From: Paramoeba atlantica
Taxonomy: Eukaryota; Protista; Discosea
Assembly (NCBI GenBank): GCA_977017575.1
Contig: CDRNVI010000054.1
Location: forward strand, 496,001 to 560,000
Reading direction: 5' to 3'
Length of the DNA: 64,000 bases
How positions within the stretch are numbered: position 1 is the stretch's first letter; every line of letters begins with the position of its first letter. The notes under the pieces are model-generated. The model was not told where the DNA came from. It worked only from the letters and a program-made list of their open reading frames with translations, and did no database searches. The translations under genes and the position numbers were made by a program. Shown here in pieces: positions 3,642-61,691 of this stretch.

Positions 3642-4619
3642 GTATAAGTGGTGTAAGTAAGAACCGCAGAAAAACTTAGATCCGACGAATATTACAAAGG
3701 GTGCTGTGGACGAATTTCAACAGAGAATTAGTGGAAGCAAAATCTTCAATTGTTGTTCTTTTCAAAAAAAACTATTCCTTTATTCGTTTTTCAGAGCTAT
3801 CTGAAGTAGGTGACCATAAAATACAAAGATCGTACAAAAAAATCCCCAAACTTAAAAAAGAGTGTTCACTTTGGCACTTTCTTGAAAAACTTTAATTTCC
3901 GTGCTTACGCTTCTGGGGGTTGCCTTTTTCGCTTGATTCCTTTATAGGATACGCTTGCCGCAGGCTTCGTAGTAGCTTTGTTATTTGGCTAAACCGGGAA
4001 TCACCCGACTGGAAAGGGGGCGGCTAGGCTAGTAAAACAGCCTATGCGGGGTCGTCGTATGCGACCGTAGCATAGGTAGAAATTTACCTCTGCAGATCTA
4101 AATATGATTCTGTATTGAATAAACACATCGCTTCATCTGCGGTGTTGAAGCCAACGTGCGCGTACATCTGTATGCCCCTTTTTCTGAACAACCGTGATGC
4201 AGTCAATTGGACCACATGAACAGTAATAATAATAAAAGTAAAAATATTAATAATAGAAGCTTATTCAATAGTAAACTGAGCTTTTGCTTCTTGGTCAGCA
4301 GCTGAAACATTAGGGAGGAGCTTGCTGACTGGTGCAGTTTTCGGCGCACAATGTGCTACATGCACAGTGCCGCGGAAAACGTTTCCTTGCTTCGAATATT
4401 GTTTTGCACGGAACACAAGATATAACGCCGTCGACAAACAAATGAACGGTAACTCCTCGTAAGTGGTTTATTGCTTTACGGCGACGTCCGTATCAGAGTC
4501 ACCGGCTCGGATACCCGTTGCGAAGTCAAAATTTACAACCGGGCACACTTTTATGTCGTTTCTCGTGTCGGGCCGCTGGACGCCCGACTTGGCAAAGAAA
4601 GCAGCACCCGTCAATTTCT

Positions 4620-10140: not shown

Positions 10141-10521
10141 AAGACCCAATCCTCCCGTCACAAGGGGGTTAAGGAGACGTTCCGGAACCTATTGATTCAG
10201 TATGGGTTCACCCCGGATCTGGTCGAATCTAGGTTTGACAACGGACGGGGACCGGACATCTATTTCCTCCCGGGGAAGAGGCTCGTTCTAGTGGACGTGA
10301 CGGTGGTGAACCCACTGGCACATTCTTATGTGGACAAGGAGGCAGCGGAGCCCTCCTTCACCGTGATGCAGGCGGAACGCCTAAAACGGCGTACTCACGA
10401 AGAGATGGCGGGGGCCAGGGGGATCGGTTTCTTCCCTTTGGCCTTCACCACCTATGGTGTCCCCGGCCCCGAGACCCTCCAGTTTCTAAATCTGGTAGCT
10501 CGAAAGGGCAATATCAGGTGA
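10135..10521 (+). mobile_element. CRE-like RLE endonuclease 3' fragment
   Basis: [32 protein letters not shown]; homologous to 43525-44499. Confidence 0.75.
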
Positions 10522-10600
10522 CACGTATCTCTGCGAGAGCTCTCAAATGCGGTGCTAATTTTCAAAAATGGACAATTTATACGATTTTTAACCCCCCCAT
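10521..10600. repeat. Tc1-like terminal/subterminal repeat (GAGAGCTC family)
   Basis: Similar to 23195-23289, 45405-45503 (inverted) and 50297-50386. Confidence 0.6.
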
Positions 10601-10606
10601 ATTTTC

Positions 10607-11034
<428 letters not shown>

Positions 11035-11900: not shown

Positions 11901-12319
11901 GGTTGGGTAGGATTTCAATGTGTTTTTTCACGCATTCAATGGATACACGAGTATAGATATACACGAGTATTTGATACACTAGTACTCTAGTATTATTGCT
12001 TTTTGAATATGTTGGTGTTTATAGATTTGGGTAGAATGATGTGTGTTAGAATGTAGTGTAAAATTAGCAAAATACTTACTAAATCGGACGCACCGCGATC
12101 GTGTGACACTTTGATTTTTTGTATCCGTGATATAGAATTGACACTACACTCGGTTTTCATTTGGCAATGAACGATTTTAGAAAAGCTGATGAGTACAGAA
12201 CTTTTATCTTTAGACGCGACACAGAACACGAGCAAAAGATTGGGAAGAAGAGGTTCGTTCATTCACTTTTATTCCTTTGAATCGAAAGGGTACCGGACAC
12301 TTAAAGGCATTTGAACGCA

Positions 12320-15300: not shown

Positions 15301-18300
15301 TGCAAATGACCAAACTTCAAATTACGAAACTTCAAATTATCAAACTGCAAAGTACCAAACAGCGAACTACCAAGCGGCGAATTCCCAACTCGCACATTCA
15401 TCCCCGGTTACCCTTGCCGTGGATGACCTCTGCCTTGCCTTGCCCTCTCACAGTATCACCGTGCTGCTCGGCCACAACGGGGCAGGCAAATCCACCGTGC
15501 TTCACATGCTGACCGGAATGCTCCGGCCGAGCTCCGGGGATATTCAAATCTTTGGACAATCCCTCACACAGCAATGTGAAAGGCTACGCGATGCGGGGAC
15601 CATGGGGTTCTGTCCACAACACAATTTGCTGTGGTCCGGACTCACGGTGGTTCAGCATTTGTATTTTGTTTCCGCACTGAAACAAAGTATACGATGTGGA
15701 GATAAGGAAATCGATTTTTGGGGCAATGCTTCCACCGAAATCGAACACGAGGTGAATGAAATGATGAGAAAATTGAATCTTCTTGACAAAGCTCATTTTC
15801 TTCCCTCCCAACTCAGTGGGGGTCAGAAACGTAAGCTTTCGATTTCTATGGCGCTTTTGGGGAGTAGTCCGCTTGTGGTGTTGGACGAACCCACGGCTGG
15901 GATTGACGTTGCCTCCCGCAGGGCGCTGTGGGATTTGCTGTCGGAATACGTTGCAAGGAAAACAGGAAATGGTCAAAAAGACGGAAACTCTATTTCTGAC
16001 TTGTCTCGCCCGCGAACGTTGTTGATCTCGACGCATTATCTTGATGAGGCGGACGCGCTGGGGACACAGATTGCGATTCTTCATAAAGCTCGTCTACGAT
16101 GTGTAGGCACGCCCTTGGAGTTAAAGCAACGGTATGGAGCAGGATACATTCTGTCCTTGTCGATGTTTTCGCATAGTGTGCCTTCGCCAGATCCTAGAAA
16201 CATCTCTTCGCAGGAAAGTAAAAGTTCTAGAGAAAGTAATGCAGAAAATAATAAGAACTTTCGGACACGCGCTGAGCTTTATTCTCTGATTTCGCAACAT
16301 GTACCAGAGACCCGCATTCTCGTGGACCGCGAGGCGGAAATACAAATTTCGTTGCCCTCCACAGAGTCCGAAACGTTGGCTGTTCTTTTTGATACCTTAG
16401 AAGACCCCACCGTGCGAACCCAGTATGGCATTGAGTCCATGGGCATTCAACATACTACCCTAGAGGATGTTTTCAAATACGTTTCGAGTGAAAGAGAGAT
16501 GACACTACCTTTGAAGCCGAAGGAATTCAAAACTATGGAGCACGATCCCAACCAGGAGCCTTTTTCCAGAACAAATTCTGTAAAGGAATTACAGAACACA
16601 AATCTACGAATGAATGCTGATACGCCACGCCATGCTGACCAGACACGACGTACGATCAATGTTCAAAGCCTTCCCCCTCCCTGTTTTCATCAAACACGCT
16701 ACCGTTTACTCCTAAGTCAAGTTAAAGGCATTCTCTCTCAACGACTCTCTGTAACCCTTCGAGATCGCCGCTATCTTCTCAGCGCTACGCTTCTTCCTGT
16801 GGCACTTCTATTCATGATTTTGTGGATGCACACTCGAGCGTCGGAGGTTGCGGCTCCTACACCTTTAGAGATTTCCCCGGAAGGAGCCTTACCGTCGTGT
16901 GCAGTGCTGCACTCCAAAACACAATGGGGTTGGAGTTTTTTCGGGGAGAAGCAAGCTTCGGAGTGCTCATTTCCACTCCCTATAATTCGTCGGAAACAAA
17001 GAAATGTTGACGAAAACAAGACGGACGACCCGCCTGATTGGTGGACAACTTCTTTACCCACTTTGTTCCCACCGGAATACTGCGTAAAGGAGGTACTTCT
17101 AGAGGATACAAACCCAAATCTCCCGTTCGACTTTCACTCGATCAACCACAGAGCACTGGAATCGACCCTCTGGCCTTCACCCTCGCCACACTCCGACCCC
17201 GTATACCTCCCTGCAGCGCTCCAAATACCCTCTGAAAACTCCCACGACCCCCTCTACATCCTGTGGCACAACGCTTCAGCCCCGCATGCCCTGCCCGAAA
17301 CCCTTCGTGCTCTCCACGTGGCACAAATTCGTGCTTCCGTACAACACGCCATGGGGAGTGAAGCCCATGCGACAAATGTTTTATCCTCTCCTTTTTCTTC
17401 TTATCCATCCTCCACAAAACCTCCTATTGACTTTAGCCCTTTAAAAACGAAAACCGGGGATTACCAAACGGAGGAAAACAGAATCAAAACTAAAAGCGGT
17501 GATCACCAAAATCGAACGGAAAGAAACCAAAATCAAACGAAGGAAAAAAAAATCAAAACGAAAACCGGGGATCACCAAAATCGAACTCAAAGAGACCGAA
17601 ATCCAAACCAAGGAGACCACACTCCAACGGAGGAAAACACAATCAAACCGAATACCGGGGATCACAACAACCAAAGTGAGCCGACCCATCCGACCCCAAT
17701 CCAAACAAAAACCCCAGACCCCCAAAATCAAACAAACAACCCCCATCCACCCCCCTTGAAACCCACCCTCTTTTCCCCAACCCAACCCGGAAATCCCCCC
17801 CTCCCCCCTCCCCTCCACCTCACCCCCCTCTCCCCCCCCCTCCCCTCCCCCCCGATCTCCCCCGACCCCGCGGTCCCGGACACAGCGGCCCGCGCCCTCG
17901 TACTCGCCCCCCTCCTCCTCCTCCCCTTCTCCCTCATCCCCGGGGTCTTCGCCGGCTACCACGTCGCCGAGCGAACCGCCCGCGCCCCCCACCTCCACGC
18001 CCTCGCGGGACTCCACAGCGCGACCCGCTGGTTCGCCCACTCTCTCTTCGACCTCTCCCTTTTTCTCCTCTCTCTCCTCATGTCGCTATCCGTCTTTGCC
18101 CATTTCGCACGGGACGAGTACGTCGGGGAGTGGGGGACCCTCCTGGGGACGGGGGCGCTGGTCGGGGGGTTCGGCATGAGCAGCACCGCGGGGGTGTATG
18201 TGGTGCACCGGGGGTTTGGGTCCCCGAGTACGGCCCAGGCGGCGGTGCGGCTGTTTGCGATGCTCTCGGGGTACACGCTCACGCTGCTGTCGTTTGTGAT

Positions 18301-20239
18301 GAGGGTGGCGTACCCCGGGGGGTACGCCACGTGGGTGCGGGTCTTTCGCGTGTTTCCGGGGTTCTGTCTAGGGGAGGGGTTGATGGCGCTGGCGTGGAGG
18401 GGGGCGAAGAGGGGGGTGGTGGAGAGGTGGGGGGAGGGGGGGGAGGGGGGGCTGGGGTGGGGGGGAGGAAACGAGGAGAGCCAAAAAGGGTGGGGGGGAC
18501 TGGTGGGGAGCACGTCGCCGTTGGCGTGGGATTGTGTGGGCGCCCCGGTCGCGTACCTGATGATGGAGTCGGTTGTTTTTCTGAGTATTGCGGTTGCCAT
18601 GGATGCGCCTTGGTGGGTAGCCAAGTTGTTGCGCCCGTTGATGTGTCGAATTCCTGTCCTCTCGAGAGGCTATACGGACCTCTCTGGGTTTCCTACAACA
18701 AGCGGGACGATTTCTGCTGATCCCGATGTAGTTCAGGAAGAAAAGGAAATTATGGCTGCGTGCGGCCATCAGGGTAGCCGCCCAGATGTTTGCCCTCTGA
18801 CTTCTCGGAAGCGCTCCAAGGATCTCATCACTATTGTAAAGCTAAATAAAACGTATTCGAATGGGGTTTTATCCAAACTAAAACATGATGCGCTGAAGTG
18901 CGTCGCATTTTTCAAGAATCGTATTGCGGTCTCTCTACGCAGACTACCGACCCATTCTTTTTATGAAACAAGACATTTGGAAACGGAAACAACGAATGCC
19001 GTGAGTTCTACTGCAGTTCGCTCCCTTACCTTTGGTGTTTCTCCTGGGGAAGTCTTCGGTTTTCTCGGCGCCAATGGAGCAGGAAAAACCACAACTCTTT
19101 CCATCCTTACTGGAGCGCTTTCTCCAAGCTCGGGTTATGCCACAATTTGTGGTCATCCGCTTCCCGAGAGCGTTTTTGAGACCACTGTGATGCGATCCTG
19201 TTCCCGATCTCCCGTTCTTGGATATTGTCCGCAACTAGAAGGTTTACACGAGTTATTAACCGTGAAGGAGCATTTGCAGTTTTACGCACGACTGCAAGGC
19301 ATTCTGCCCTCCCAAATTCCCACCCAGATCGAATACTTAGTCTCTCTTCTCGAACTCTCCTCCTATTTGAACGTTTGCGCGACGAATCTCAGCGGAGGTA
19401 ATCGTCGAAAACTTGCACTCGGCATCGCACTATTGGGTTCCCCTCGAGTATTAATTCTAGATGAGGCCAGCGCGGGAATGGATCCGTTAACACGGCGGAC
19501 GTTTTGGCAACTTTTGCAACAACTTTATGGAAATCATGACAGAGAGAGCAGGTTGATGGATACCGAATTGAACGAACATAAAAAAATGGGCACCAGAAGT
19601 GCGAGAATTAAGGAGCTGAACAACCTGCCTTCTTCGGATCCTTTTCATATTGCTGTACCCATAGAGCAGGAGGTCCTGTTTTCGAATCATCAAGAAGGCT
19701 TAGCAATTTCTACAGAGCGTTCTGGAGAAGAACTAATCCCTCGTTGTGTGTTACTAAGTACCCATCACTTAGAAGAGGTCGAGGCGTTGTGTCACCGCGT
19801 CGGGATCCTGGCAAAAGGAACATTGCGTTGTCTTGGGACTCTGCCACATTTAAAAAGTAAATTTGCGGTCGGGTATGAACTTTGTTTCGGGCTTCGGAGA
19901 AAGCTACGAAAACAGAGAGTATACGCCACGTGCCAAGAAGAAATGAAGGTTTTAGCAGATCAGGGCATACATAATAAAAGTGGGGGGAGTGATGCAGATG
20001 ACGTACCTCAGCTTTGTGACGTACTCCGGATGGATATATTTCCCCAGTGCCAAGTCATTCTTCGTGAGAGACATGACACGCAACTTAGGTTTCAGATTGA
20101 AGGCGAGTTCTTGCTGTCCCACGCGTTTCGTAGATTGCAGGATCTGTGTCGCAAGCATAAGTTTGCGGTACAGGAATACAGTTTGAACAGGTGCAATCTG
20201 GAAAGCGTTTTTCTGCATCTTTCAGGTCACGAAGCGTAG
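12320..20239 (+). CDS. Full-length ABCA-subfamily ABC transporter (TMD-NBD-TMD-NBD)
   Basis: Single intronless ORF (track starts at TTG 12311; first ATG 12320). EEKESRTREVLWIMGL; NBD1 GHNGAGKST / LSGGQKRKL / VVLDEPTAG; NBD2 GANGAGKTT / LSGGNRRKL / ILDEASAG; C-terminal LESVFLHL. Confidence 0.95.
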   Translation: MDFFFIVVNTVWLIWLAHTRLSMYRYRKRSHNETDHRPGVYSPYDNYEIFASPSWVQFRLCMRKHYWLKKHRKWQTFLEIVLPLFLLLPTLWGYKATGHVKSIAPSRSYIEGNVYDLDTEFFGSTTQGGRICSLRDSYKLSSFHIIPRCPSDAIRKPYPVGLRADKGSEWLTEMLKELQSGELLNHLPEFTSVAKSDGETQRTDAAKGTETALGNLLDTLETSGVMDGVADWFQNMTDGTSPLVASPLSGERNHKSRQKGATRKKGTHYVETRDEDYAAFHTKNLRTLPWERLKTRRPQADGVYATKKRKAFTLAERPPSDTFASKSTQTNEVVLYCLPSPSDLCISGTLQDGPDPPRYRVRGNVPQRIPSLEAFLLQKHFQRLSQLQPRRQTRHSSRLNENMNPDVELKERFFPSTVLWFASNESEIAERFQKFVLRRHPIAASLLGMRNSSSFKCETASSDEHTEHLDRPYTFPCNIETTYFNTTSDALQACERTSLSEQAANVNSPPCSAQGVVWAIVDFRTFNNETGKYDYAIYMNHTRLPPSTLKRTPEGITDSFKAMSSAPWDTDDMEMFLPVLGSNAPFTKYLTSGFLVLQSLLDEFVCDEQTQYQRKEDVEGSSPFSTKPILVRFPDPPKLLFDFLSQIGPHLPLTLIFGFTYFVSHLTQALVEEKESRTREVLWIMGLRRTSYYASWAIAYAFSSAISSGLLSTALSRTLLSQTSFFVLFAVLFLFCFSLIGFSALLSTLFERAQLAALVTPLIFTLSTLPVSLMLPTSQDEETIQLLVAYTNPFYWIQIVCKYVLHFLRISPSSDPLPNFSVLLALPFSSTSFTLWMRQMVKRESSGRGISVLEVLTGASPNWFYQSCWLLLLSIIFSAFLALFLDQVLPNTYGIQKPFFEVVKDFTSNFYNSLFHLVNLWKATIPVKTTTWSKAKRCTNKPTVPRSDASTTIHLQHLRKTFPDTLPPPPQQRAMLSNAHISENNRLETANDRTANDQTSNYETSNYQTAKYQTANYQAANSQLAHSSPVTLAVDDLCLALPSHSITVLLGHNGAGKSTVLHMLTGMLRPSSGDIQIFGQSLTQQCERLRDAGTMGFCPQHNLLWSGLTVVQHLYFVSALKQSIRCGDKEIDFWGNASTEIEHEVNEMMRKLNLLDKAHFLPSQLSGGQKRKLSISMALLGSSPLVVLDEPTAGIDVASRRALWDLLSEYVARKTGNGQKDGNSISDLSRPRTLLISTHYLDEADALGTQIAILHKARLRCVGTPLELKQRYGAGYILSLSMFSHSVPSPDPRNISSQESKSSRESNAENNKNFRTRAELYSLISQHVPETRILVDREAEIQISLPSTESETLAVLFDTLEDPTVRTQYGIESMGIQHTTLEDVFKYVSSEREMTLPLKPKEFKTMEHDPNQEPFSRTNSVKELQNTNLRMNADTPRHADQTRRTINVQSLPPPCFHQTRYRLLLSQVKGILSQRLSVTLRDRRYLLSATLLPVALLFMILWMHTRASEVAAPTPLEISPEGALPSCAVLHSKTQWGWSFFGEKQASECSFPLPIIRRKQRNVDENKTDDPPDWWTTSLPTLFPPEYCVKEVLLEDTNPNLPFDFHSINHRALESTLWPSPSPHSDPVYLPAALQIPSENSHDPLYILWHNASAPHALPETLRALHVAQIRASVQHAMGSEAHATNVLSSPFSSYPSSTKPPIDFSPLKTKTGDYQTEENRIKTKSGDHQNRTERNQNQTKEKKIKTKTGDHQNRTQRDRNPNQGDHTPTEENTIKPNTGDHNNQSEPTHPTPIQTKTPDPQNQTNNPHPPPLKPTLFSPTQPGNPPLPPPLHLTPLSPPLPSPPISPDPAVPDTAARALVLAPLLLLPFSLIPGVFAGYHVAERTARAPHLHALAGLHSATRWFAHSLFDLSLFLLSLLMSLSVFAHFARDEYVGEWGTLLGTGALVGGFGMSSTAGVYVVHRGFGSPSTAQAAVRLFAMLSGYTLTLLSFVMRVAYPGGYATWVRVFRVFPGFCLGEGLMALAWRGAKRGVVERWGEGGEGGLGWGGGNEESQKGWGGLVGSTSPLAWDCVGAPVAYLMMESVVFLSIAVAMDAPWWVAKLLRPLMCRIPVLSRGYTDLSGFPTTSGTISADPDVVQEEKEIMAACGHQGSRPDVCPLTSRKRSKDLITIVKLNKTYSNGVLSKLKHDALKCVAFFKNRIAVSLRRLPTHSFYETRHLETETTNAVSSTAVRSLTFGVSPGEVFGFLGANGAGKTTTLSILTGALSPSSGYATICGHPLPESVFETTVMRSCSRSPVLGYCPQLEGLHELLTVKEHLQFYARLQGILPSQIPTQIEYLVSLLELSSYLNVCATNLSGGNRRKLALGIALLGSPRVLILDEASAGMDPLTRRTFWQLLQQLYGNHDRESRLMDTELNEHKKMGTRSARIKELNNLPSSDPFHIAVPIEQEVLFSNHQEGLAISTERSGEELIPRCVLLSTHHLEEVEALCHRVGILAKGTLRCLGTLPHLKSKFAVGYELCFGLRRKLRKQRVYATCQEEMKVLADQGIHNKSGGSDADDVPQLCDVLRMDIFPQCQVILRERHDTQLRFQIEGEFLLSHAFRRLQDLCRKHKFAVQEYSLNRCNLESVFLHLSGHEA

Positions 20240-26744: not shown

Positions 26745-29729
26745 TTAGCAAGCAGAGCGGTTTTCCTCGTCCGTCCATTCAGCTTCGTTCCTCCGAGCCC
26801 AGATAATATAGCTGGCCCGACCAGCCATTAAACTCATGCTTTCTCTGCATGATCTGGCTCGTTTTCGTTCCCCTTGGAACACGGCGTCAAGATAGCGACA
26901 GGATCCGCTAGGAAGTCCCCGTGCGCCGATCTCGAACGCTAGGGCGTAGCAGTTCGGGTTCTCGATTCTGCGCTCGTGGAGAAGTAAGTTATACTTCTCT
27001 GACTTCCGCCGGTGTGCGTTTTCACAGTTCTCCTCCCACGGAACAGTTAGCTCAATGATGAACTCGGTCCCGTTCCGTAGTTTGATCCAGCCATCCGGGC
27101 GCAGTAAACTGTCGCTACTGGTGTACCACGGGGGTGGGTTCCGTTCACCCGTGAGGTCAAAGTGGCAAGCTTCGGTGGTAGGGGATTGGCGTACGTGTCG
27201 TGCGAACTCGCGGAGAACCATGTCGTGTCTTAGTGTGTACCTCCCTTTTTGTAAGGATGTGTTGCATGATGAAAGGACGTGTCTTGTTGTTTGTGGTTTG
27301 TCTCGGCATATGGGACATTTTGTATCAGAGTGATAGTTGCGACCCCATTGTGCAAGGGATACTCGGGAGGGCAGGGGGGTTAGAGTCATGACGAAGGACA
27401 TGAATCGCGAGAGTTTCTCGTTTCGGATCCCATGGATGGCAGATACAAATTCTTGTGCCATTTCTGGGTCTGACGGAAACTGCCACCAGAGGGCAGCAAC
27501 AGGAGCACGTTGTCGTAGACGTGTAATCATTTGTTCTTCGTGGGCATCACGGAGTATTTGTCGTGCGCGCTGTGGGTCGTTAAGATGATCGGTTATTTGT
27601 GCACCTGGGCGGATTTGACCTTTCGCACGCTTCCTTTGCTCTTCCTGGATGCGGAAGCGCAATGCCTTGAGCACGTTCGGGTCTCGTGATTGATGCATTT
27701 GGGTAAGTGACGTTCCGGTGCACTCGTACCAGAGTTGTGTCAGACTTTTGAGATTCCAGCCGCCGCAGGAGTATAGTACTTCTGTGCTACCGGCACGAGC
27801 CATGTTAATCCATCGTCGAATGTGTGCTGTGACTCGCTTCTGAAGCCGCAGAACTGAGCTGAAAGAGATGCAGGGGTGGATGGTAAACTGAAACCGAAGT
27901 CGGGAAATTATAGCGTGTGTGTAGATCCACAGCTTAGCCGGGAGATTATGGGCGCTGGCACTCGTGTTTTCAAGCCATCCTTTCAGCTTTGAGTTTAATT
28001 TATTGAAAAGTTCGTTTAGCTGCTGAGATCCAGGGGCGAGGGTCATACCAAGAAATGAGCTTCCGGCGTCGCAAATATGTGGAATTTTTTCTCCGTATGT
28101 GGTTACTGCAGGTCTTCTCGTCATGTACCCCGGGTGCTCTTCGCCTTTCCGCGTGCTCATACATTGGACTCGACTTTTTGTGACGTTGATTTTTAATCCG
28201 ATTTTGGAGAGCACCGTGGTTAGTGCGTTCAGCGAAGTTTGCATGTCACGGTCACTTTCGGTCAGAATGGTTAAATCATCGGCATACGCTTTCAAGAAGT
28301 TGTTATCGCCGTTGGGAAGGCGCATGCCAAAGGTTGGACACGAGAACCGAACGTATCGTAATACGATTTCCATGACTACTAAGAATATAGTGGAGGAGAG
28401 TGTATCGCCTTGTAAGACTCCCTTCTTTACATGTATGGGACGCGTTAGACCTTCGTAACATTTAACTCGTATGTGTGCATCAGTGAGGCTGTCTTTGATG
28501 TAGTCGACAACGTTGCAGGGTATGCCTGCCCAAGCTAGGGAAGCTAGTATAATGTTATGCGGGATCGAACCAAAGGCGTTAGTGAGGTCCAATTGGGCAA
28601 GACAGTACTGTCGTTTATGTCGCTGGTAGTGCTGGAGGAGGGTGCATAGAGTTTGGGTGTGCTCCAATATCCCATTGATTTCGGAAAGAAACCCTTTCTG
28701 TATTTCCGGGTCAATCACATTGTGTCCAATAAGATGTTGGGTCAGGCGATGCGATATGATTGTGTGGAACGCTTTACCAAGGGCGCTCGTCAGTGAAATG
28801 GGGCGCCAATTTTTGGGGTTTTCCGGTGCTCCGCTCTTATGTATCAGCTTAGTGATTGCAGTTTTCCATGATGGAGGGCAGGTCGAGAAAGTCATCAGAT
28901 TATTGAATACCTTAGCAAATTGATCATGCATGGATGGACATTTTTTAAGAATCAGATTGGTGATCGTGTCTGCACCGGGTGAGCTGGAGTTCCGTTTCAT
29001 ATTGATGGCTGCTGTGACATCGTCTCGCGTGATTGGGTCCCAATGCATGGGTTGGGCGGCTCCTGGTCCGAGTACATCTGGAGGAGGCAGTTGGAAGAGT
29101 TGTTCACTGGGTTTAAAGCTTGACTCGTAGTATGTCTCTATGGTGTTCCGGTCACAGGTCGGGTAAGTTGCATTCTGTACTTCATTAGCGTCAGGTTTGT
29201 CGATCGTTTCTGAAGCTGCTGTCCACGGATTTCTGGAAAATCTCTCGGAGGCCCAGTGCTGATCGAATTCTTCTCTTTGTTTCGTCGCTTCTTCCTCACG
29301 TATCCTGACTAGCTTTCGACATTCTTTGATTTGTGCTCGTAATTCGTCTCGTTCCGTCCTACTTCTCGTATAGCGTAGCGAAGTTTTCAAGGTTGTGAGA
29401 TGGTGTTTCAGTTCTTGTGCGACTCTCTCCGTGGCGAGTGGTCGATACCTTCGTCGGGCGTGTCCGGTGCTAGCTCTGATGAGGAAGCCCCTTGTCGGAT
29501 TCGCTTCCGTCGCTATTTCGCAAGCAGATACGGCTAGGGCGGCGCTAAGAAGTTCCGCGTTACGTATAGCTGTCTTCCTGTCCGTTGTATCGCTTAGAAG
29601 TTCGTTGCAACGTGCACTTGCTCTCGCTTCAACCTGTCGCCATTGCTCTTCGCTGAGTCGTATGGTAACCTTCCCGCCAAGTATTGCATTGTGCTTTTGC
29701 AGGAGTTCTACTGCTTTTTGCATACGCAA
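26745..29729 (-). mobile_element. HERO-type RT+RLE non-LTR retrotransposon, family B; open 994-aa ORF, probably 5'-truncated
   Basis: WRPISL, QLDLTNAFGS, GVLQGDTLS, AYADD; CPIC..H..C; RYTLRHD; LRPDG..IIELTVPWEE..HRRKSEKY; FEIGARG. Confidence 0.92.
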
Positions 29730-37985: not shown

Positions 37986-38024
37986 AGATAGCGTCTTATA
38001 AAGATACAGTTTCTTAACTTGTTG
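37986..38024 (+). other. Spliced-leader-like 39-mer at the retroelement 5' junction
   Basis: AGATAGCGTCTTATAAAGATACAGTTTCTTAACTTGTTG, compared with the kinetoplastid SL pattern ..ACAGTTTCTGTACT..TTG; 39 nt upstream of the element ATG. Confidence 0.5.
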
Positions 38025-38063
38025 AATTATTTTCAATTTTGTACTAACTTTATCTTCCGAAGC

Positions 38064-41000
38064 ATGGCCTCCAATGTCACCTCACCGGCTCCCATCGCAC
38101 ACGACGGCCCCCCTGGAGGACCTGTCAGCGCGCAGCGACATCCCCAGAGCTTTCACTTCATCCAAAGTCGAGCGATGCCCGTCAAAATCCGCCCCTCGGA
38201 CAGCGTCACATGGTCATATTTCCCAGACACGCATGCCGCAGCCATTGCCCTCACAGAACGAGAGTTCTTCTCGAGTGTCCACATGGTTGAAGCCTCGATC
38301 GGCAAATCCTTGAAGTCGGAAAGCAAAAGAAGTGATGGTCTGATAGTACAAACGTGTACCACTCAAGATGTCATTGAAAACAACGCATGTGAACACCTAA
38401 AATACCAAGAAACGGGAAACCCAAGTCGCACGTTTTGTCACGCCAGCTGGAGTTCCGCCTACAGGGATTCGTTCATGCAGCTTAACGCAGTGTACTCCTC
38501 TTCGAACGCGCTCGGCAAAGCGGTCACGAAGAAATTATGTGGTAGTGACATCCCAGGATTACGAAAATTCCAAATCACACACGTAACTCAAAAAATACAA
38601 CCCATTGAACTACTACGGGGTCACCCAGAGATCACCTACGGCGCACCCTATAGGATCCGAGATGACTCTTACAAGGTGTCACCGCCATCATATGCCTCAA
38701 AACACGCTTCCGAACCACGTGCCCCATGCGCTCATAAATGCCGGGACAAAACATCGTGTCTTCACGAATGTTGCAATGTACGACACGAAGGATCTCTTTC
38801 GCCTAACATGTCTCTTCCCTCTCCGGAGGACGTTGCCCCTATGGAACCCTCACTTACTTCTCACAGAAGACCGCGCAAACACACATGCCGCGACAAAAGA
38901 AATTGTCTGCACAAGTGTTGCAAAGTGGGGGTCCCCATTACAGATGCCCAAAGTAGTCCTCAACCAGTGCTACCCCTCGTGGAACCACCCATAGCTCGAG
39001 CAAGTAGTCCACTACCAGCAGACTTATCCATAGACACCGATCAGCATACCACACCAGACATCGGACACTTCGAAGAGGTCAGGGATCCGGAGCTCCCGAC
39101 CGCAAATCTGTCCTCACTAGCATACATGGATGACGCCGCACACCACACACAAACATCAACCAATGAAGTCAATTATCACCCCTGTCGGCGCATAAGTAGC
39201 AACAAAGCTCAGTGCAAGCATCGATGTTGCAAAAATGGTGTCATACAACCTAGCACGGAGGTTGTACTCCGCGAACCCGTCCGTACCTCTCCAGACCTGC
39301 ACACCAGCAATGACAACAACACCCCTGCCCCAACAGCGCCTCGTCGCAACTGCGCTCATAAATGTAAGGACAAGGCAACATGTAAACATCAATGCTGCCA
39401 GAAAGGAGTTCTCCTCAAAGTCGCTGAAGTAGCGTACTCTGCCATATGCTGGACCACGAGAAATATACTGTGCCCTGCAATGGGTGATGCGGAACGCGCC
39501 GCAAAAGCTTCACTACCGCCCCCTCCACGCGCAACAACCTACCCCCCAGTTCACACCAACCCCTCGAATCGCTCGAGTCCAATACTGAGCCCTGTACGGA
39601 ATGCACCACTTGTCCACGCCCCACAACATGATTCTGCTTCTGTACGCCGATCCTCACCTTCTTTACCCCTTGTGCAGTCCGCAACAGATCCCACGCCTCT
39701 GCCTTTACCTTTACCTCCCCCACCAGAAGGAAACTGCGAACACACGATATTGCAGCGCATCCCTCGTGTCCGGCAAGTCCCGGCTACCCGACCCCGCCCT
39801 GTACTGCAGAACCTACTCGAAACATTCCACACAATAAATGGAGGTCGCGTTCTAGTCCGTTTCACAGAGGAACAGTGGGAGAGTATGGTTGCGAAGATCG
39901 AGGAGCGCTGCAACTCGTACATCCACCTGGCGCGAAACAAAGAGGACGCCCTGTCGCAGGCTGAAATACTCTCAGCAATCCTCGCTGTAACTGCATTCGA
40001 GGCCGCACGGGAAAATGATCCGACGCACGGCTTTCTTATACGGACCAGAACTGGCAGATCCCGAAGAAACTCACGACCCTTAGCCATTGAACGCACAGTG
40101 AAAGTACTCAGTCAACACGTTCGACAACTTAAACGTGCGTTAACGTTCATGAAGGGTCCTGCGAGAAACAAGCAACGAGGGGAAATAAAGGAAGCCGAAA
40201 AGGCACTAAAACAGTACATGGAAGAATCCAGTATGCAGAGGAAAGAAATCGGTCGACGGTGGGCTCTTACGCGATTCCAGCGAAATCCCTGGACAGCCGC
40301 GCGCGAATGCTTAGATCGCGTCGACCCATCTACCTCAGAAACTGAGACGTCCTACCCTACAGTTCCTGTACAGGAGGTTGAAAGATTCTTTGTGGGCTCA
40401 ATGTCTAGACCAGAAGAGATACACAAGATTCCTCCCGCAGAATTTACGAAACCCATTCCCCTTGATGAGATGCAATGGTCAGATATTGACTCAGACATGA
40501 TCCCAGCAGCCGTCGCATCCAAACGCTCTGAGGCTGCCCCAGGCTCGGACACTGTATCGAACGCGCTGCTAAAGCGCTGCGCCCCTCTCTTTACTCACAT
40601 GGCACAGGTGTTTAATGATGTCCTAAAATTTGGTGTATGCCCTCCAACCTGGAAAACTGCGGTCACTCGACTTATCCACAAAGGGGGCCCCACCTCAAGT
40701 ATGGAAAACTGGCGGCCGATAAGCTTGACTAGCTGCATTGGGAAGCTTTTCCACTCAATCCTCAGTCACCGTATCCTTCAGCATTCCCTGGATTCCAATG
40801 CCCTGGATACAACAATACAAAAAGGCTTCTTGCCGCATATGAATGGGACAGTTAAGCACACCCAGGTTCTTTGCGAGCTCCTCGAGCACCAGCGGCGCCA
40901 CAAAAGGCAATACGTGCTTGCCCAGTTTGATATCAAAAACGCGTTTGGATCCATACCCCATACAATTTTATTTCAGGCCTTAAAATGGGCGCGCGTCTCA

Positions 41001-42749
41001 CCGATCCTCATTAACTACATCAAAGCGCTGTACGAACGAGCGTCTATACAAATTAAATGTGCAGAAGGACTCACGAAGTCTATTGAGATAGGTCGTGGTG
41101 TATTGCAGGGAGATACGCTTTCGCCTATTTTATTCAACTTGGCGATGGAGCTAGTTCTGCGTTTTGTCCGTTCAAGTTGCCCCGAATACGGGATCACGTG
41201 GAATGCGAAAGAAATTTTTCTAAAAGCCTTCGCAGATGACCTCACTATTCTGACAAATACCCCCCAGGAAATGCAGAATGCTACAAACGCACTCGTCAAA
41301 GTTCTAAGCGATATTGGGATGAAACTAAACGTGAAAAAATGCCGGCTGCAACACATGGCGATGACGCAAGACTCTGGATATATGACACGCCGACCACAGA
41401 TCATGATCGGCACGTCACCTATCCCACACATATGTGATAATGGTAGCATATTTTTAGGCATGACGCTCGCACCCGGTGCTCAACAAGGCAAGACACTCTT
41501 TTTAAAACTACGAACCCGTCTGCGAGCCTGGTTGCGTAATATATCTTCCAGCGCACATGATCTTCCCGCGCGCCTGTGGATATACAATAACGGAATCATC
41601 TCTCGTCTGCGGTATTCCTTCGTCGTGAACTCATGCCTTACCTTCAATCACGTACTTCGGCTACAGCGATGCCCCACACGCGAAATTCGGAAATGGTTAA
41701 ACGTAGCGAAATCAGCAACTAGTGAGCTGTTCTATTCAGAGCATGGCTGGAATCTCATGAGTCTGTCAAAACTTTGGCTTCTTTCCACTGTGGGGACAAT
41801 GGAACAAATGGATAAATCGCGTGATCCCGAGGTCCAGCACGCTTTATGTGAGCGCATCAGGCGAGAAGCGAACAAAAGGAGAGCAGGATACATTCGCCCG
41901 CCGACGGATATGCACAGTACAAGCCATAGTAACGTCCGAAGACTCCTTGGAAGCGAATACGAGCGACACCTCACGGAAGCCGTCCAACGGCGTACTGCCG
42001 TAGCAGGACGATGGTTCAGAATCGCAACGGAAGCAGACCTTGCGAGAGACTTCGCCGCCGCCCTATGCAACCTTAAGAGTGAATCACTTTCGCGGTTCAC
42101 ATCCTCAGTGCTTACCGAGACGCCGCTCCCAACCAGGGGGTCTCTTCGTAGGTGGGGCGTATCGACACATGCGAGCGATAAATGTCCCATCTGTGACACC
42201 GAGACACAAACTACGCGGCATATTCTATCTGGTTGTAGGAAATCACTCGGACAAGGGAGGTATGCCCTGCGGCATAACATGGTACTACAGGCATTAGCGA
42301 ACTCCGTACAACGATTCTCCTCCACTAGTCAATGTCACTTCGATCTCCCCCACTTCCGCTCCACCCCCGCGTGGCTCACGAACCTTGATACTGAGCTACG
42401 TCCTGACGGATGGGTGAAACTATCTAACGGAGAAGAATACATTATAGAACTTACCTGCCCTTGGGAGGAGAACTTTGAGTTCGCGCACGAGCGCAAAATA
42501 GAAAAGTACACGAGTTTATATCACTCTAGAAAACTCGACCGTCCTACCACATTCCTATTCGTCTTCGAGGTGGGAGCGAGAGGCAAACTGCATATGTCGG
42601 CCCGAACGCTCAACTCTCTCTTCATGGGAAATGAAGAAGCGGTTGCAGTGTGTCGCCCAAATATGACGACTAGCGCTCTTCGGGGAAGTTTCATAATTTT
42701 CCAGCACCGCGAGAACAAACAGTGGATGGAGGTTAGTTCTGAGGAATGA
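38064..42749 (+). mobile_element. HERO-type RT+RLE non-LTR retrotransposon, family A; intact single ORF of 1561 aa
   Basis: ATG 38064; four Cys/His fingers, RT (WRPISL, FDIKNAFGS, GVLQGDTLSP, AFADD), CCHC knuckle, RPDG..IIELTCPWEE..HERKIEKY, FEVGARG. Confidence 0.95.
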
Positions 42750-56737: not shown

Positions 56738-57355
56738 ATGTCATTCTACTCCACGGCTTCTACGCGCGCATCTGACGAAACAACTCTTTCCGGTTCTCGG
56801 ACAGGAAAGGTCAAAGGGAATGCCTTACCCTTAGAGTATGACTTGGTGAGATTCATAGACAATGTTGAAAATCAGCACAACTCGTGGAATACGCACACTC
56901 CAGCGTGTGAGTGGGAGGGTAACAATTGTGAGGAAGACGGCACCTTATGGCGTCTCTTTTGGTGTGTGCGTAAGTTACGTGGTACACCCACTTGGGAGTA
57001 TGTGCCGACAACCTTAACTCAACTCCTGATGCGTGCGAACAATCTTTCTGGTGAACTCCCGCTTGAGCTTTTTCCCTCCCCTTTGCGAGTAGTTTTGCTT
57101 AATCAAAACAATTTTAGTGGAGAGCTTAATTTTCTACACCTACCAACTTCAATTCAAGTTCTAGACTTAGACTACAACGAATTCGAAAACATTATCCATT
57201 TTTTCTCACTTCCTCAGTCACTACGTAGTGTGGGGCTAGCGAACAATCCTGAGTTACGGGGAACGTTGGATGCGGAATCGTTATCGAAGTCCATGCGCTA
57301 CAATGTTGAATCCACACGCATCATTGTAAAGAATGGTCCGATGATTCGCGAGTAA
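56738..57355 (+). CDS. LRR protein
   Basis: ATG 56738; RTGKV, TPACEWEGNNC, LRRs. Confidence 0.83.
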   Translation: MSFYSTASTRASDETTLSGSRTGKVKGNALPLEYDLVRFIDNVENQHNSWNTHTPACEWEGNNCEEDGTLWRLFWCVRKLRGTPTWEYVPTTLTQLLMRANNLSGELPLELFPSPLRVVLLNQNNFSGELNFLHLPTSIQVLDLDYNEFENIIHFFSLPQSLRSVGLANNPELRGTLDAESLSKSMRYNVESTRIIVKNGPMIRE

Positions 57356-57819
57356 TCGTAATAACATAACATCGGTTACGACGAATACTGTTTATTATAA
57401 ACAGTACAAAGCACCGGTATAAATTATACCGGTGCTTTGTTCGTTTTTTGGATATGTAGTATCTTCGATGATTTCGGTCATCGAACGGTTCATGTCATTG
57501 AACGGTTTTACAGGTGATTTCGAAAAATTAAAATTCAAACAAAAAATTGAAAATACTAACATCAAACTATTTTCTCGGCCAGTGTACCACAACTGACTTC
57601 AGAAGACTGTATCGGGAGGAGGAGGAACAAGGCAAAATGCAGAAACGTTTTTGAGGATGACGATTTCCTTGTATGAAATGCTAGGATCTGCTTCGGAAGT
57701 ACGGGAGTGAGAGGAGGCGATCCGGTAGAGTATGTTTTTGCTGGTTGCACGCATGCAACGTGAATACCGCAGCCAGTTCATCAAGCTTGCCGTGGTCCAT
57801 CGGACTATGCGGGTTCCTC

Positions 57820-58139
57820 TCCTCGATTCCAGATCACGTAGCTTCCGAAGATCGCACTTCGCATTATTTGTTGTAGACAAGATGATGTGGCTTCTTCATC
57901 CCCGTCGAATTGTGGACGAGTTGAGATGCCGTTGTGTTGGGCATTCCTCTCGCACCAATCTCAAATGCGATAGAGTGACATGGGTCATTGTCCGGGCGAT
58001 GCTTGTATAACAGTTCGTTGCGCTTACCGCTTTTACGATGATGATCCCCCATAAGGTTCTCCTCCCACGGTGCGGTAAGCTCTATAATATGCTGACAAAC
58101 ATTTCTTAGTTTAACCTAGCCGTCGGGTCGCAATAATGA
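57820..58139 (-). mobile_element. HERO family-B-like 3' RLE fragment, truncated by the TIR element
   Basis: Minus frame SLLRPDG*VKL..IIELTAPWEEN..RKSGKR..FEIGARGMP, then GSYVIWNR after a frameshift. Confidence 0.8.
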
Positions 58140-59892
58140 GGGAGTTGCTATGCCCTGTCCATGGTATCATGTTCAGGGGAACAGCAACTCCCCATTACCT
58201 CGGCGTAGTAAACACGCCTTGGCTTGCCTGGCACTACGATTGCCGAAAAAAATATATTTTCGGTTCATTTCGCAGCCCAGTCGCTTCCCACTTAAGGGGC
58301 CCGCTCCCACAACCGAGTAATCTCCCCGGCAGCACGGTTTTACTCATGCGTCGAGAAGGCTGGGGTGTGAGACCAGGGTGCATTTATAGAAAATTTTCGG
58401 AAGAAGAAATACGAAGGAAATTTTACTGCATAATGGAGTAGAAAACTTTGAGTGCAATAGAACAAAGGGTTGGCGTAAACCTTTGGTTAACGTTTTTTCT
58501 TTTGGGGGGGATTTACTTTCTTTGCCATTCCTCATGCTATCCACTCATAAATTTTACTAATTACTCTAGATTCGTGTGTTTGTTTCCTCCAGTTACGCTT
58601 TCTATAATTCTTACATAGGGTCTACATGTACATCGCCAGTTCTTAGAGCTGAGTTCAGGAGTGCTTCTTTTATGTCATAATTATGCCCTTCTCGAGTCAA
58701 CCCGTCTGCTGGGTTTTCTTTAGATTTAATATGGAAAATTCGAAAAGAATGTCCATGTTTCCCTATCTGTTCATCCATTTCCGTGATCTCATTACACATC
58801 GATCTCCTAACTGATGTACGCCCCGATTCTGATGGTATTTCACTCTGGTGAAACCAGTGTCGCATATCAGCGGATAAAAAGTTTACGTTGGGGAAATTCT
58901 CTATTACATGGATAATTTCAGCGATAGCTGGAAAATTCAAGCAAGGAGGGCGATTGCACATCTCATTTAGTGGTGTTCCATCCGCAATACTTCTTGACAA
59001 TTCCTCCCCTTTTGATGCCTCAAAGTAACGTAAATATAAACGTGATGATGATCGAGAGTCGTGTGCCACACGTAGCACCCCGCATTCCACGAGTTCTAAT
59101 AAATGTTGTAACCAAACCCCGGAGGATAGTTTCCTTATTTTCCCGTGAAAAGGGGGACAATTTATCCATTCAATAAAATTTTGGGTACTTTTCAATGCCG
59201 TGCAACATTTGATACCCCATGGTAAACCATGTTTTAGGTGTGTTGATGTAAAGAATCCAAGTTGTTCCTTCAGCATTTATGAATCTTCGTTAACAAAGAA
59301 ATCGGGTATAAATGCATCAAGCAAAGCAACCGTTTGCTTTTTTTTTCTAGTTTTCTTTTTTTTTCTCCACCGAATAACACTAACGCGTTCACTATCGTCG
59401 GTCTGAATTTCTGATTCAATATTCCTACTAGGCGAGATATCCTGAAAAGCCGTATTCCGAGCGTCAACCCGAGACGTCCGGTGTGTGCCTCGATACTTCC
59501 GTATGGGGGGATCTATAACGCACCAACAATACTCCCCCCCTTTGTTTTCTCTCCCCCGAACACTCCATATTTTTCAACTTCATATTCGTATTTCGAGCGT
59601 CAACCAGAGACGTCCGGTGTGCCTCGATACTTCCATATGGGGGGATCTATAACGCACCAACAATAGTCCCCCCCTTTGTTTTCTCTCCCCCGAACACTCC
59701 ATATTTTTCAACTTCAAATCTTCTTAGGGGGGAGGACTCCCGTTACCATGCCTCAAGTGAGGATTAAGGAACTAAGTTTTTTTTTTCGGCAATCGTAGTG
59801 CCAGGCAAGCCAAGGCGTGTTTACTACGCCGAGATAATGGGGAGTTGCTGTTCCCCTGAACATGATACCATGGACAGGGCATAGCAACCCCC
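58140..59892 (-). mobile_element. 113-bp-TIR element carrying a deleted LTR/DIRS-type RT-RNase H
   Basis: TIRs at 58140-58252 and 59780-59892 (2 mismatches). ORF 58611-59276 has YFEASK..SRSIADG..LNEMC..PP..FP..ADMRHWFHQ (RT N-half) joined to FHIKSKENPADGLTR (RNase H C-terminal motif). Confidence 0.75.
59451..59716. repeat. Tandem duplication, 2 x ~133 bp, inside the TIR element
   Basis: CGTATT.CGAGCGTCAACC.GAGACGTCCGG...CCATATTTTTCAACTTCA at 59451 and 59587. Confidence 0.9.
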
Positions 59893-59904
59893 TCATTATC
59901 ACTC

Positions 59905-59937
59905 CTTCGTAAGCACCATGTTACCGGGACCAAGCCC
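59905..59937 (+). ncRNA. Degenerate 5' half of a twister ribozyme
   Basis: CTTCG TAA GCAC C ATGTTA CCGG GACCAAGC CC aligns with the complete twister and shares its TCATTATCACTCCTTCGTAA leader; the 3' core is missing. Confidence 0.5.
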
Positions 59938-60050
59938 TAGGTGCCAGGCATGCCATACCACGTCACAACTCCCCACCCTCTCCCTTCTGTTTTTATTCTG
60001 TTTTCACTTTATTGTAAAAAAACATGCCGGAGAGGAGGGTGTATAACGCA

Positions 60051-60785
60051 AATGCAACGGCAAGTGAGCCCCGAAGGACACGGAACCCATGGGCCTCCCA
60101 GCACGAATGCTGGGGCGGTGGTACCCCGAAGGGTACGGAGCCCATGGGCCTCGTTACAGAGGAATAAATGCAACGGCAAGTGTGTCCCGAAGGACACGGA
60201 GCCCATGGGCCTCCCAGCACGAATGTTGGGGCGGTGGTACCCCGAAGAGTACGGAGCCCATGGGCCTCGTTACAGAGGATGAATATATAAATGCAACGGC
60301 AAGTGTGTCCCGAAGGACACGGAGCCCATGGGCCTCCCAACACGAATGCTGGGGCGGTGGTACCCCGAAGGGTACGGAGCCCATGGGCCTCGTTACAGAG
60401 GATGAATATATAAATGCAACGGCAAGTGTGTCCCGAAGGACACGGAGCCCATGGGCCTCCCAGCACGAATACTGGGGCGGTGGTACCCCGAAGGGTGCGG
60501 AGCCCATGGGCCTCGTTACAGAGGATGAATATAAATTATATTTATAAATGCAACGGCAAGTGTGTCCCGAAGGACACGGAGCCCATGGGCCTCCCAGCAC
60601 GAATGCTGGGGCGGTGGTACCCCGAAGGGTGCGGAGCCCATGGGCCTCGTTACAGAGGATGAATATATAAATGCAACGGCAAGTGTGCCCCGAAGGACAC
60701 GGAGCCCATGGGCCTCCCAGCACGAATGCTGGGGCGGTGATACCCGAAGGGTACGGAGCCCATGGGCCTCGTTACAGAGGATGAA
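60051..60785 (-). repeat. Tandem array of 6 units (116-134 bp, mostly 123), each with three UUCG-loop hairpins
   Basis: Units start at 60051, 60167, 60290, 60413, 60547 and 60670 (AATGCAACGGCAAG). Minus strand carries GTACCC-TTCG-GGGTAC, CCCAGCA-TTCG-TGCTGGG and GTGTCC-TTCG-GGACAC; GCCCATGGGC palindrome twice per unit. Confidence 0.95.
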
Positions 60786-60943
60786 GTACTGCCAGGCCGG
60801 GACCAAGCGAATTGATGCGTGACATTTTCAGGCGTGTAAGATTGTTTAGGTAAATGGAGCTAAATGTAGTAGTTCTACTGGATACTAGAAACAAGTAGTT
60901 CAATTATATTTAGTTTATAATCGTGCTATAGATGTATTGAAAT

Positions 60944-61012
60944 CTTCACCCTCACACTCCGCCGAATATGGCGGTGCCGGGCTTGGGACCGGTAACAAGC
61001 GTGTTTACGAAG
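60944..61012 (-). ncRNA. Twister ribozyme, P1-type with P5
   Basis: Minus-strand RNA: CUUCG UAA ACAC GC UUGUUA CCGG UCCCAAGC CCGG CA CCGCC AUAUUC GGCGG A GUGU GAGGG UGAAG. Helices P1, P2, P4, P5 and pseudoknots T1 (CCC/GGG) and T2 (GC/GC) can all form. Confidence 0.82.
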
Positions 61013-61691
61013 GAGTGATAATGAAGTATCACTCGATATCCCGCGCCCTTCACTGCGTCCCCACGGAAGGCGAAGAGGTCCAGCAGGGAGCGTTGATTGT
61101 GCCTACCCCTGCTGGCCCTAAATATCTCTGGCGGTCTTGCCCTGCATGACAAAACTACTATCAGAACAAGGTGTTGAACTTTGACAGATCCTCTTTTGGG
61201 TCAAATATGAATTCTCATTTCAAAAACAAGATTAACTGGGTTGAACTCCAACGCTTCACCCCTCACTTCAGTTGACTTCGTCCTATTTCTAGTTATCCTG
61301 ACCTCCAGTGACTTCCAGCGACTGTCACCATCGCCAGCGACTGTCAGCGACCTCCAACTACTGTCTACATAATCTCCATAGATACTAAGTAAATAATATT
61401 TATAATGTGAAGAATAGAAGATTTATAATGAGGAGAACCATCGCTAGTACATTAAGCCTGCAAGTTTGTAGTACATTAAGGTTGTACTGTAAGTACTGTG
61501 CTGTAAGTACTTTACTGTACATTAAGGCTATACTGTAAGTTGAATAAGCTGAATGAGAGATTTGCTAAGATGGATTTACTACCCTAGGGCATTGATCTAC
61601 ACCTGGGGCATTATGGGGTACTACATTGCACAGCTAATTTACAAAGTTGTAACTTAAATTTCGAATTGGACAGCCCTACTCACCATCGGGA

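Follow-up and report, generated by a model that had tools for sequence, protein, structure and literature searches.

The 64,000-nt stretch of Paramoeba atlantica DNA analysed here (hereafter the window; contig CDRNVI010000054.1, positions 496,001–560,000 of the forward strand) carries, from 61023 to 58137 on its minus strand, what is very probably a single defective member, mobilised in trans, of a family of DIRS-like tyrosine-recombinase (YR) retrotransposons in which the first approximately 85 nt form a type-P1 twister. The initial annotation of this locus had described a complete minus-strand twister and a decayed plus-strand twister half facing each other across an array of hairpins and abutting an element with terminal inverted repeats (TIRs) and a reverse transcriptase (RT). 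It had read the whole as a retrozyme-like element or an integrated multimer of a small structured RNA copied by an RT in trans, and the neighbourhood of the RT as possibly coincidental. The limits of the unit were taken from a DNA search of the genome itself (45.7 Mb in 248 contigs, haplotigs included), in which the minus strand of window positions 57300–61300 served as the query. Homology to other loci began exactly at 61023 and stopped at 58133–58137, and the homologous span takes in everything from the twister and its spacer to the two arms, including the array and the “half twister.” About 10 other loci also had the entire unit. Complete copies in unrelated surroundings were located on C21/C32, C54:334k, C26, C67/C185, C39, C28/C37, and C2/C12, while C99, which carries a complete unit as well, is a haplotig of the window. 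The twister, the array, the half twister, the arms, and the RT remnant travel together at about 10 independent loci, and the adjacency of the RT is not a coincidence.

On the minus strand the order of the parts is twister, spacer, array, internal complementary region (ICR), deleted RT/RNase H (RH) open reading frame (ORF), and 3′ terminal repeat. Both ends were common to eight sequenced copies with differing flanks, the 5′-end being (CA)TTATCACTCC... and the 3′-end ...AGCAACTCCCTCA. A target-site duplication of any length (TA, TWA, or longer) was sought in the flanks of at least eight copies and none was found; CA was common to both ends, and some copies showed extra microhomology, such as TCATTAT at the window copy. 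The insertion site of the window copy was examined for gene disruption and no disrupted gene was seen.

The type-P1 twister motif (Rfam clan CL00120), at 61012–60944 on the minus strand, reads CUUCG-U^AA-ACAC-GC-UUGUUA-CCGG-UCCCAAGC-CCGG-CA-[CCGCC AUAUUC GGCGG]-A-GUGU-GAGGG-UGAAG. The conserved core, that is, U^AA at the cut, GC, the P4 loop UCCCAAGC, and the 3′ GAGGG, is present in it, and this core was invariant or nearly so across 15 twisters of the genome. The initial call of a complete minus-strand twister was borne out by a covariance model made from the genome's own twisters, which scored the window motif at 79.3 bits (E 3.5e-21) and matched nothing else in the 64-kb window even at E ≤ 10. 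In the genome, the same model gave at least 139 full-length matches at E ≤ 0.001 (haplotigs included). The minimum-free-energy fold of the window motif recovered P1, P2, P4, and P5. The cut predicted earlier, between 61007 and 61006, agrees with the U^A step of the twister consensus. The leader, 61007–61023, lies upstream of it and would be missing from the cleaved RNA, and cleavage would define where a minus-strand RNA that extends into the array starts, as the initial annotation had predicted.

A search of the genome with the 111-nt twister region returned 40 matches, and one with the Rfam model RF03160 returned 47 at E ≤ 1. When the fetched copies were parsed, at least six twister lineages emerged, which differed in their helices and had the same core. 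Between lineages, P2 was represented by ACAC/GUGU, CUCC/GGAG, and CCCU/AGGG, P4 by CCGG/CCGG, CCAG/CUGG, and CCUG/CAGG, and P1 by CUUCG/UGAAG, CUUCCA/UGGAAG, UUAC/GUAA, and others, while the P5 stems were unrelated. Covariation was counted on 15 aligned genome twisters scored on the twister structure, with slid partners and 500 shuffles as controls. In these 15 sequences, 91.6% of the cells were in standard pairs versus 36%–47% with the partners slid. Sixteen of the 24 pairs had changed on both sides (including pairs of P2, P4, P5, and pseudoknot T2), and the covariation score was reached by none of the 500 shuffles. Counted by helix, both-side changes affected four of four pairs in P2, five of five in P5, five of six in P1, and one of four in P4. 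Pseudoknot T1 (GC/GC) was invariant, hence uninformative; T2 was 100% paired and showed one compensatory change, from CCC/GGG to CCA/UGG, in lineage F. The twister fold is well supported, and its catalysis is predicted. In three twister lineages, Tc1/mariner-type transposase ORFs (DDE_3 plus HTH_Tnp_Tc3_2) were also observed 1–2 kb downstream of the twister and on its strand (L065:1097–1738 on the minus strand, L067:2225–3097 and L072:1956–3011 on the plus strand). They are probably nested insertions.

On the far side of the array, a 24-nt inverted repeat (59893–59916 versus 61001–61024, 96% complementary) accounts for what had been called a decayed plus-strand twister half. A partial inverted copy of the twister is indeed present there; its decay is not. 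The 120-nt arms (58133–58252 and 59780–59899, 98% complementary) directly adjoin the twister–array block, and the segment 59787–59938 proved to be the reverse complement of the 3′ terminal approximately 110 nt followed by the 5′ tip of approximately 43 nt. Read in reverse complement, this segment is ...GGACAGGGCATAGCAACCCCCTCA/TTATCACTCCTTCGTAAGCACCATGTTACCGGGACCAAGCCC..., and the same order, 3′ tip and then 5′ tip, was seen as ...GCAACCCCCTCA/TTATCACTCCTTCGTAAGCACC... in subfamily 1, to which the window copy belongs, in subfamily 2 and in the autonomous copy L078. The tips joined in it are the 3′ tip CCCTCA and the 5′ tip TTATCAC, and the joined sequence is the same in the approximately 80%-diverged subfamily 2 and in the full-length L078. 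The internal region is a DIRS-type ICR carrying the circle-junction sequence. In the title of a 1985 paper by Cappello, such a region is named an “internal circle junction sequence.” Of the two arms, one corresponds to the 3′ terminal repeat and the other to the complement of that repeat within the ICR. The block abuts an RT remnant, as the initial annotation had it, but the arms are not TIRs of a separate transposon.

The copy of the 5′ tip in the ICR was compared with the tip itself. In three subfamilies the leader copy in the ICR was identical to the twister leader of its own subfamily (CACTCCTTCGT, CACAGACTTCAT, and CACAGGCTTCAT, respectively), and the identity ran to two bases past the predicted cut; the tip and its internal copy have evolved in concert. 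From position +3, fixed differences common to all subfamilies separated the tip from the ICR copy (AAACACGC versus AAGCACC and UCCCAAGC versus GACCAAGC). Such a pattern, read from sequence comparison, suggests that the 17 nt before the cut may be rewritten from the internal copy in each cycle and the rest inherited via RNA. The ICR tip copy gave no match to the own-genome twister model at E ≤ 10, had no stable fold (z +0.5) and lacked P2′, P5, and GAGGG in all subfamilies. The “half twister” is a conserved ICR copy of the 5′ tip, neither decaying nor a ribozyme.

Other twister lineages also contained a downstream inverted partial copy of their own 5′ tip (L061:1020–1066/2301–2347, L065:2193–2231/3086–3124, and L072:993–1039/1179–1225). 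These copies span the leader through P2 and GC. As other lineages have them too, the design of a tip plus its spare is general in this genome.

The 221-aa ORF between the ICR and the 3′ repeat had no match in a Pfam search, and a k-mer protein search with it found near-identical proteins only. An exhaustive HMMER search returned 170 relatives, most of them proteins of 550–700 aa with RVT_1 and RVT_3. Residues 16–150 of the ORF aligned to the N-terminal RT part and residues 151–220 to the C-terminal end of the RT/RH proteins, and because its two segments correspond to opposite ends of these proteins, the ORF is an internally deleted RT/RH. Full-length RT/RH ORFs of 567–599 aa with RVT_1 and RVT_3 exist in the family. 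Every 587–599-aa RT ORF of the genome follows a family-A twister of its own strand at a distance of 4–10 kb, an ORF of approximately 293 aa lying in between, and the order twister, YR, RT on one strand was found at C30, C19, C43, C54, C45, C29, and C16. Two full-length copies, L077 and L078, were read from ENA contigs of the same or a very near genome. L077 consists of an arm, ORF1 of 329 aa, a 299-aa ORF matching Phage_int_SAM_4 (E 0.001), an RT/RH of 567 aa and an inverted arm. L078, of approximately 7.3 kb, contains the twister (6404–6493), a 78-nt array, the ICR (7874–8064), ORF1 of 347 aa, a 293-aa YR ORF, the RT, and the 3′ repeat ending at 13662. Its YR ORF (10001–10882) matched, in the expected order, Phage_int_SAM_4 (E 4.7e-4), Phage_integrase (E 8.4e-3), and Phage_int_SAM_1 (E 0.015), and the consensus of the recombinase alignment keeps LRSCE...HTLRHGG...KHY, which fits the R-H-R-Y pattern of tyrosine recombinases. 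Judged from these matches, the recombinase is a good, though not airtight, candidate YR whose signature is weak. The full-length relatives carry a gag-like ORF1 besides the YR and RT/RH, and the L078 element shares the orientation of the host genes around it, which form a run on one strand (helicase, glutathione synthetase, and an EF-Tu-like gene). The window copy has no gag and no YR and its RT is gutted, consequently it is dependent on full-length relatives; the earlier proposal of a ribozyme-bearing, non-autonomous retroelement that needs an RT in trans is supported in this respect.

The six tandem structured units reported between the inverted copies were recovered by Tandem Repeats Finder (60050–60785, period 123, 6.0 copies, 92% matches). 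One unit folded with –57.5 kcal/mol (z –4.9) on the minus strand versus –48.8 kcal/mol (z –2.6) on the plus strand, and in this fold the two GCCCAUGGGC palindromes of the unit pair together. The number of units ranged from 1 to approximately 25 between element copies, and haplotig pairs with identical flanks also differed: L038 had two units and L041 three, while the window had six and L048 more. As these probable haplotigs differ in their number of 123-nt units, the array is polymorphic within the sequenced strain. Among 36 distinct units, G-C/G-U and U-A/U-G alternations were seen, which are tolerated on the twister strand only. At the corresponding position, the leaders of subfamilies 2 and 3 and that of the autonomous copy contain other arrays, again with UUCG hairpins and palindromes on the twister strand. 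In one of the subfamily 2/3 arrays, the unit is 78 nt long and combines a GGUCC-UUCG-GGACU hairpin with a CCUCGAGG palindrome; another has an 83-nt unit in up to 46 copies. In family-A leaders, CTTCGG occurred 254 times in sense and nine times in antisense orientation. A coding function of the array was considered, as both unit lengths, 123 and 78, are divisible by 3 and ORFs run through the arrays, and was rejected: unit lengths of 116–134 nt break the frame, and the Pfam matches in the array ORFs are low-complexity noise. The array is an unstable, copy-number-variable minisatellite of the 5′ leader RNA of the element. Because the design of hairpins plus palindromes recurs in other subfamilies, it may, speculatively, act in packaging or dimerisation. 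The coordinates of all parts are collected in Table 1.

Table 1. Parts of the twister-headed element in the window, with the strand and the basis of each assignment
Feature	Position	Strand	Basis
Whole element, non-autonomous, ~2.89 kb	58137..61023	-	Own-genome DNA homology limits; unrelated flanks
5′ tip/leader CATTATCACTCCTTCGU, including the 5′ strand of P1	61007..61023	-	Sequence reading; repeat boundary by genome search
Type-P1 twister motif with P5 stem; predicted cut U61007/A61006	60944..61012	-	Covariance model, covariation, fold
AT-rich leader spacer, kept among subfamily-1 copies	60786..60943	-	Alignment by eye and genome search
Array of six 123-nt units in tandem; every unit has three C(UUCG)G hairpins and two GCCCAUGGGC palindromes	60050..60785	-	Tandem Repeats Finder and fold
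Leader segment, array to ICR	59939..60049	-	Kept among copies
ICR part L′, inverted copy of the 5′ tip	59896..59938	+	Inverted repeat and copy comparison
ICR part R′, inverted copy of the 3′ terminal ~110 nt, ends CCCTCA, joined directly to L′	59787..59895	+	Arms, 98%; copy comparison
134-bp tandem repeat, two copies, between ICR and ORF	59451..59716	-	Tandem repeat search
221-aa ORF, internally deleted RT/RH	58611..59276	-	HMMER relatives; open in five other copies
3′ terminal repeat, ending ...AGCAACTCCCTCA	58137..58252	-	Inverted-repeat search and copy comparison

All copies of subfamilies 2 and 3 examined for their target (L033:1022–5355 and the flanks of L031, L032, L034, L035, and L058) were inserted at one position of one sequence, with the insertion point at ...ACGATAAAGATA[CA]GTTTCTGTACCTTGTTG. 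The uninterrupted target reads ...ACGATAAAGATACAGTTTCTGTACCTTGTTG, and its 22-mer occurred 838 times in the genome versus zero for the reversed control. Its core, CAGTTTCTGTAC, we take to be the conserved core of kinetoplastid spliced leaders. As all these copies occupy one position of that sequence, subfamilies 2 and 3 integrate site-specifically into spliced-leader sequences, and the contexts hit were both leader-gene-like (followed by GTAC) and leader plus other sequence. The window copy, a member of subfamily 1, does not lie within a spliced-leader sequence. Elsewhere in the window, a spliced-leader-like sequence (at approximately 37995–38026) heads a retroelement with a RT ORF of the long interspersed nuclear element (LINE) type at 38019–42749 (plus strand), and a second LINE-type RT ORF is located at 26745–29729 (minus strand). 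The 134-bp tandem repeat within the element coincided with a homology breakpoint in the own-genome search (query positions 1714/1716). Just outside the 5′-end, the segment 61035–61158 is 81% similar to C70:221962–222085 and C44:784219–784342; both look-alikes are oriented the other way and located approximately 600 bp past the 3′-end of a subfamily-2 copy. Farther out, a 101-nt inverted repeat (63094–63194/63291–63391, 98% complementary, arms 96 nt apart) is accompanied by a 41-nt pair (63196–63236/63252–63292) and looks like a small foldback element or one resembling a miniature inverted-repeat transposable element (MITE). The window also contains an intron-less ORF of 2642 aa for an ABCA-type transporter at 12311–20239 (plus strand).

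Several results weigh against the assignment of the window copy to a twister-headed, DIRS-like family. Rfam models gave no match at gathering thresholds in the 64-kb window; Twister-P5 (RF02684) reached 22.5 bits there (E 0.08, cut-off 37.6), the best genome match of RF03160 was 39.1 bits with a cut-off of 67.2, and the Rfam score of the L078 twister, 37.4 bits (E 1.8e-5), was also below the gathering threshold. The Rfam cut-off is one curated for other lineages and is no structural feature. All YR scores were below the Pfam cut-offs, PDB sequence searches with the YR gave no matches, and the AlphaFold2 model of the YR had a pLDDT (predicted local distance difference test) of 48, with the catalytic half unusable. 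The true ends of the element share only a 25-nt, 76% inverted match (58193–58217 versus 60999–61023), and the ICR sits in the 5′ leader, upstream of the ORFs and far from the 3′ repeat, unlike in DIRS-1, where it lies next to the right repeat. The 36 distinct array units contained no double compensation. Finally, the window copy is antisense to the neighbouring leucine-rich repeat ORFs, and read-through transcription of it is not assured.

The closest alternative accepts a YR retrotransposon but denies its twister a part in 5′-end formation: the motif would be a relic or have antisense or host transcripts as its targets, and transcription would start from an internal promoter. DIRS-1 sets the precedent, with an internal transcription start, an ICR, and no ribozyme (PMC7192593). 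We consider this unlikely for the present family. Several element lineages have retained the twister through compensatory changes, invariably at the very 5′ tip and in sense orientation, and the exact identity of the tip and its ICR copy ends 2 nt past the predicted cut. Moreover, kinetoplastid-type genomes transcribe polycistronically, and for this reason a device forming 5′-ends at the RNA level would be useful. The L1Tc Pr77 ribozyme may be compared (cited in PMC12278014). A retrozyme- or viroid-like origin, as favoured by the initial annotation, would imply a small structured RNA, flanked by two ribozymes, that is excised and circularised, possibly replicates as RNA, and is copied by an RT in trans. 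A real twister does face a highly structured array, an inverted twister-like sequence does lie on the far side, and the window copy is non-autonomous, yet each unit has one functional-looking ribozyme, the second copy being on the opposite strand without P2′, P5, GAGGG, or a model score. Ribozyme-bearing direct repeats, the mark of retrozymes, are absent. The array is a leader repeat of variable copy number with no ribozyme in its units, and not a multimer of a viroid-like RNA. What is copied between loci is the whole 2.9-kb unit instead of the 1.1-kb block, and the family has full-length members encoding YR and RT, all of which makes this origin very improbable.

Still less credit can be given to two unrelated MITE-like DNA transposons standing side by side, one delimited by the inverted repeat of the twister leader, the second by the 120-nt arms, with a DDE transposase mobilising both. 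Inverted repeats do bound both blocks, and a DDE_Tnp_4 ORF is present inside the related copy L032. Comparison with a sister copy assigned this ORF (3518–4699) to a 2.7-kb insertion with GGACCC/GGGTCC ends and a 3-bp duplication (AGT); the segment L032:2159–4894 is a nested PIF/Harbinger element in the ICR arm of a subfamily-2 copy, absent from the sister copies, and a Harbinger origin of the arms was rejected. Target duplications were absent around either block and around the whole unit, the blocks met at an identical junction in all copies and subfamilies, the internal ORF is what remains of an RT, and a lone block with target-site duplications was seen at none of approximately 40 loci. A PIF/Harbinger or other TIR transposon or MITE was likewise dismissed, given the lack of a target duplication and the foreign, nested nature of the sole DDE ORF. 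A non-LTR (long terminal repeat) retrotransposon of the Perere-3 type was rejected too, as there are no duplications and the autonomous members encode a YR and no endonuclease. The copies that seemed 5′-truncated, a possible sign of non-LTR elements, had diverged, were interrupted, or represented haplotig variants.

The YR retrotransposon with a 5′ twister, which we prefer, shares most with DIRS-1 and DIRS1-like elements of Dictyostelium and other hosts: gag-like, YR, and RT/RH ORFs, an ICR complementary to both joined tips, and a short shared end sequence with no target-site duplication (PMC7192593, PMC6681497). The ICR has been defined previously (PMC6681497), and its role in DIRS-1, where it was shown to be essential, is the restoration of incomplete transcripts (PMC7192593). 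A full element would be restored from an incomplete RNA here as well. The elements differ in that here the 5′ tip is a twister, so that the RNA 5′-end would arise by self-cleavage and not by an internal start, the long inverted terminal repeats are weak, and the leader contains large structured tandem arrays. With the kinetoplastid VIPER/TATE elements and their short derivative SIRE, it has in common the host group, as judged by the spliced-leader sequence, the order of gag-like, YR, and RT/RH ORFs, the lack of target duplications, and non-autonomous short derivatives (PMC12278014, PMC6681497), but VIPER/TATE have split direct repeats (A1...B1A2B2) in place of an inverted circle-junction ICR. 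In the literature searched, with incomplete coverage, no ribozyme was reported in VIPER/TATE or DIRS-1-like elements. The T-variants of Schistosoma Perere-3 also have a 5′ twister, co-transcribed and proposed to free the element RNA. Perere-3, however, is a non-LTR element using target-primed reverse transcription and obtains the 5′ strand of P1 from its target duplication (PMC8501958); the present elements are YR-based and without duplication, and the lost P1 strand has its spare in the ICR. Retrozymes are similarly non-autonomous and ribozyme-bearing and use an RT in trans, but they have hammerheads in direct, LTR-like repeats and circular RNAs, as opposed to the one twister, the lack of direct repeats, and the YR-type partners seen here (PMC4918200). 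SLACS, CZAR, and CRE of trypanosomatids resemble subfamilies 2 and 3 in occupying one fixed spliced-leader position; they are non-LTR elements with a restriction-like endonuclease, and the window copy lies outside spliced-leader sequence. A full-text literature search of incomplete coverage found no paper linking twisters to tyrosine-recombinase retrotransposons or to Euglenozoa.

The following cycle can be proposed. The element would be transcribed inside a longer RNA, either polycistronic or read-through, and the twister would cut between U61007 and A61006, leaving a 5′-OH element RNA without its first 17 nt. During reverse transcription, the ICR would restore the missing tip and bring the ends together, a step proposed for DIRS-1 and in part tested there, and the YR would integrate the circle at a short CA core. 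Tentatively, and with somewhat less confidence than doubt, we read these features jointly: the twister and the ICR would be a self-repairing pair, in which the 5′ strand of P1 is cut off in each cycle and the 17 nt are rewritten by a DIRS-type splint; the subfamilies residing at the spliced-leader site may borrow the transcription of spliced-leader genes, with the twister trimming the leader-derived 5′ piece; and the arrays of palindromes plus UUCG hairpins may be a domain for RNA dimerisation or packaging.

If true, the self-repairing pair would explain how a twister of type P1 can head a retroelement, and the architecture predicts that the leader upstream of the cut is copied from the internal spare in every cycle. 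Twisters are widespread, but to our knowledge a role has been demonstrated for them in one setting only, the Schistosoma Perere-3 elements. The family described here would provide a second and mechanistically different setting, in which a twister makes up the first part of YR retrotransposons in a protist with polycistronic transcription. At the locus itself, the inward-facing “ribozymes,” the hairpin array, and the “TIR” element are all explained as one ordinary, defective copy of this family, which should guard against annotating them separately.

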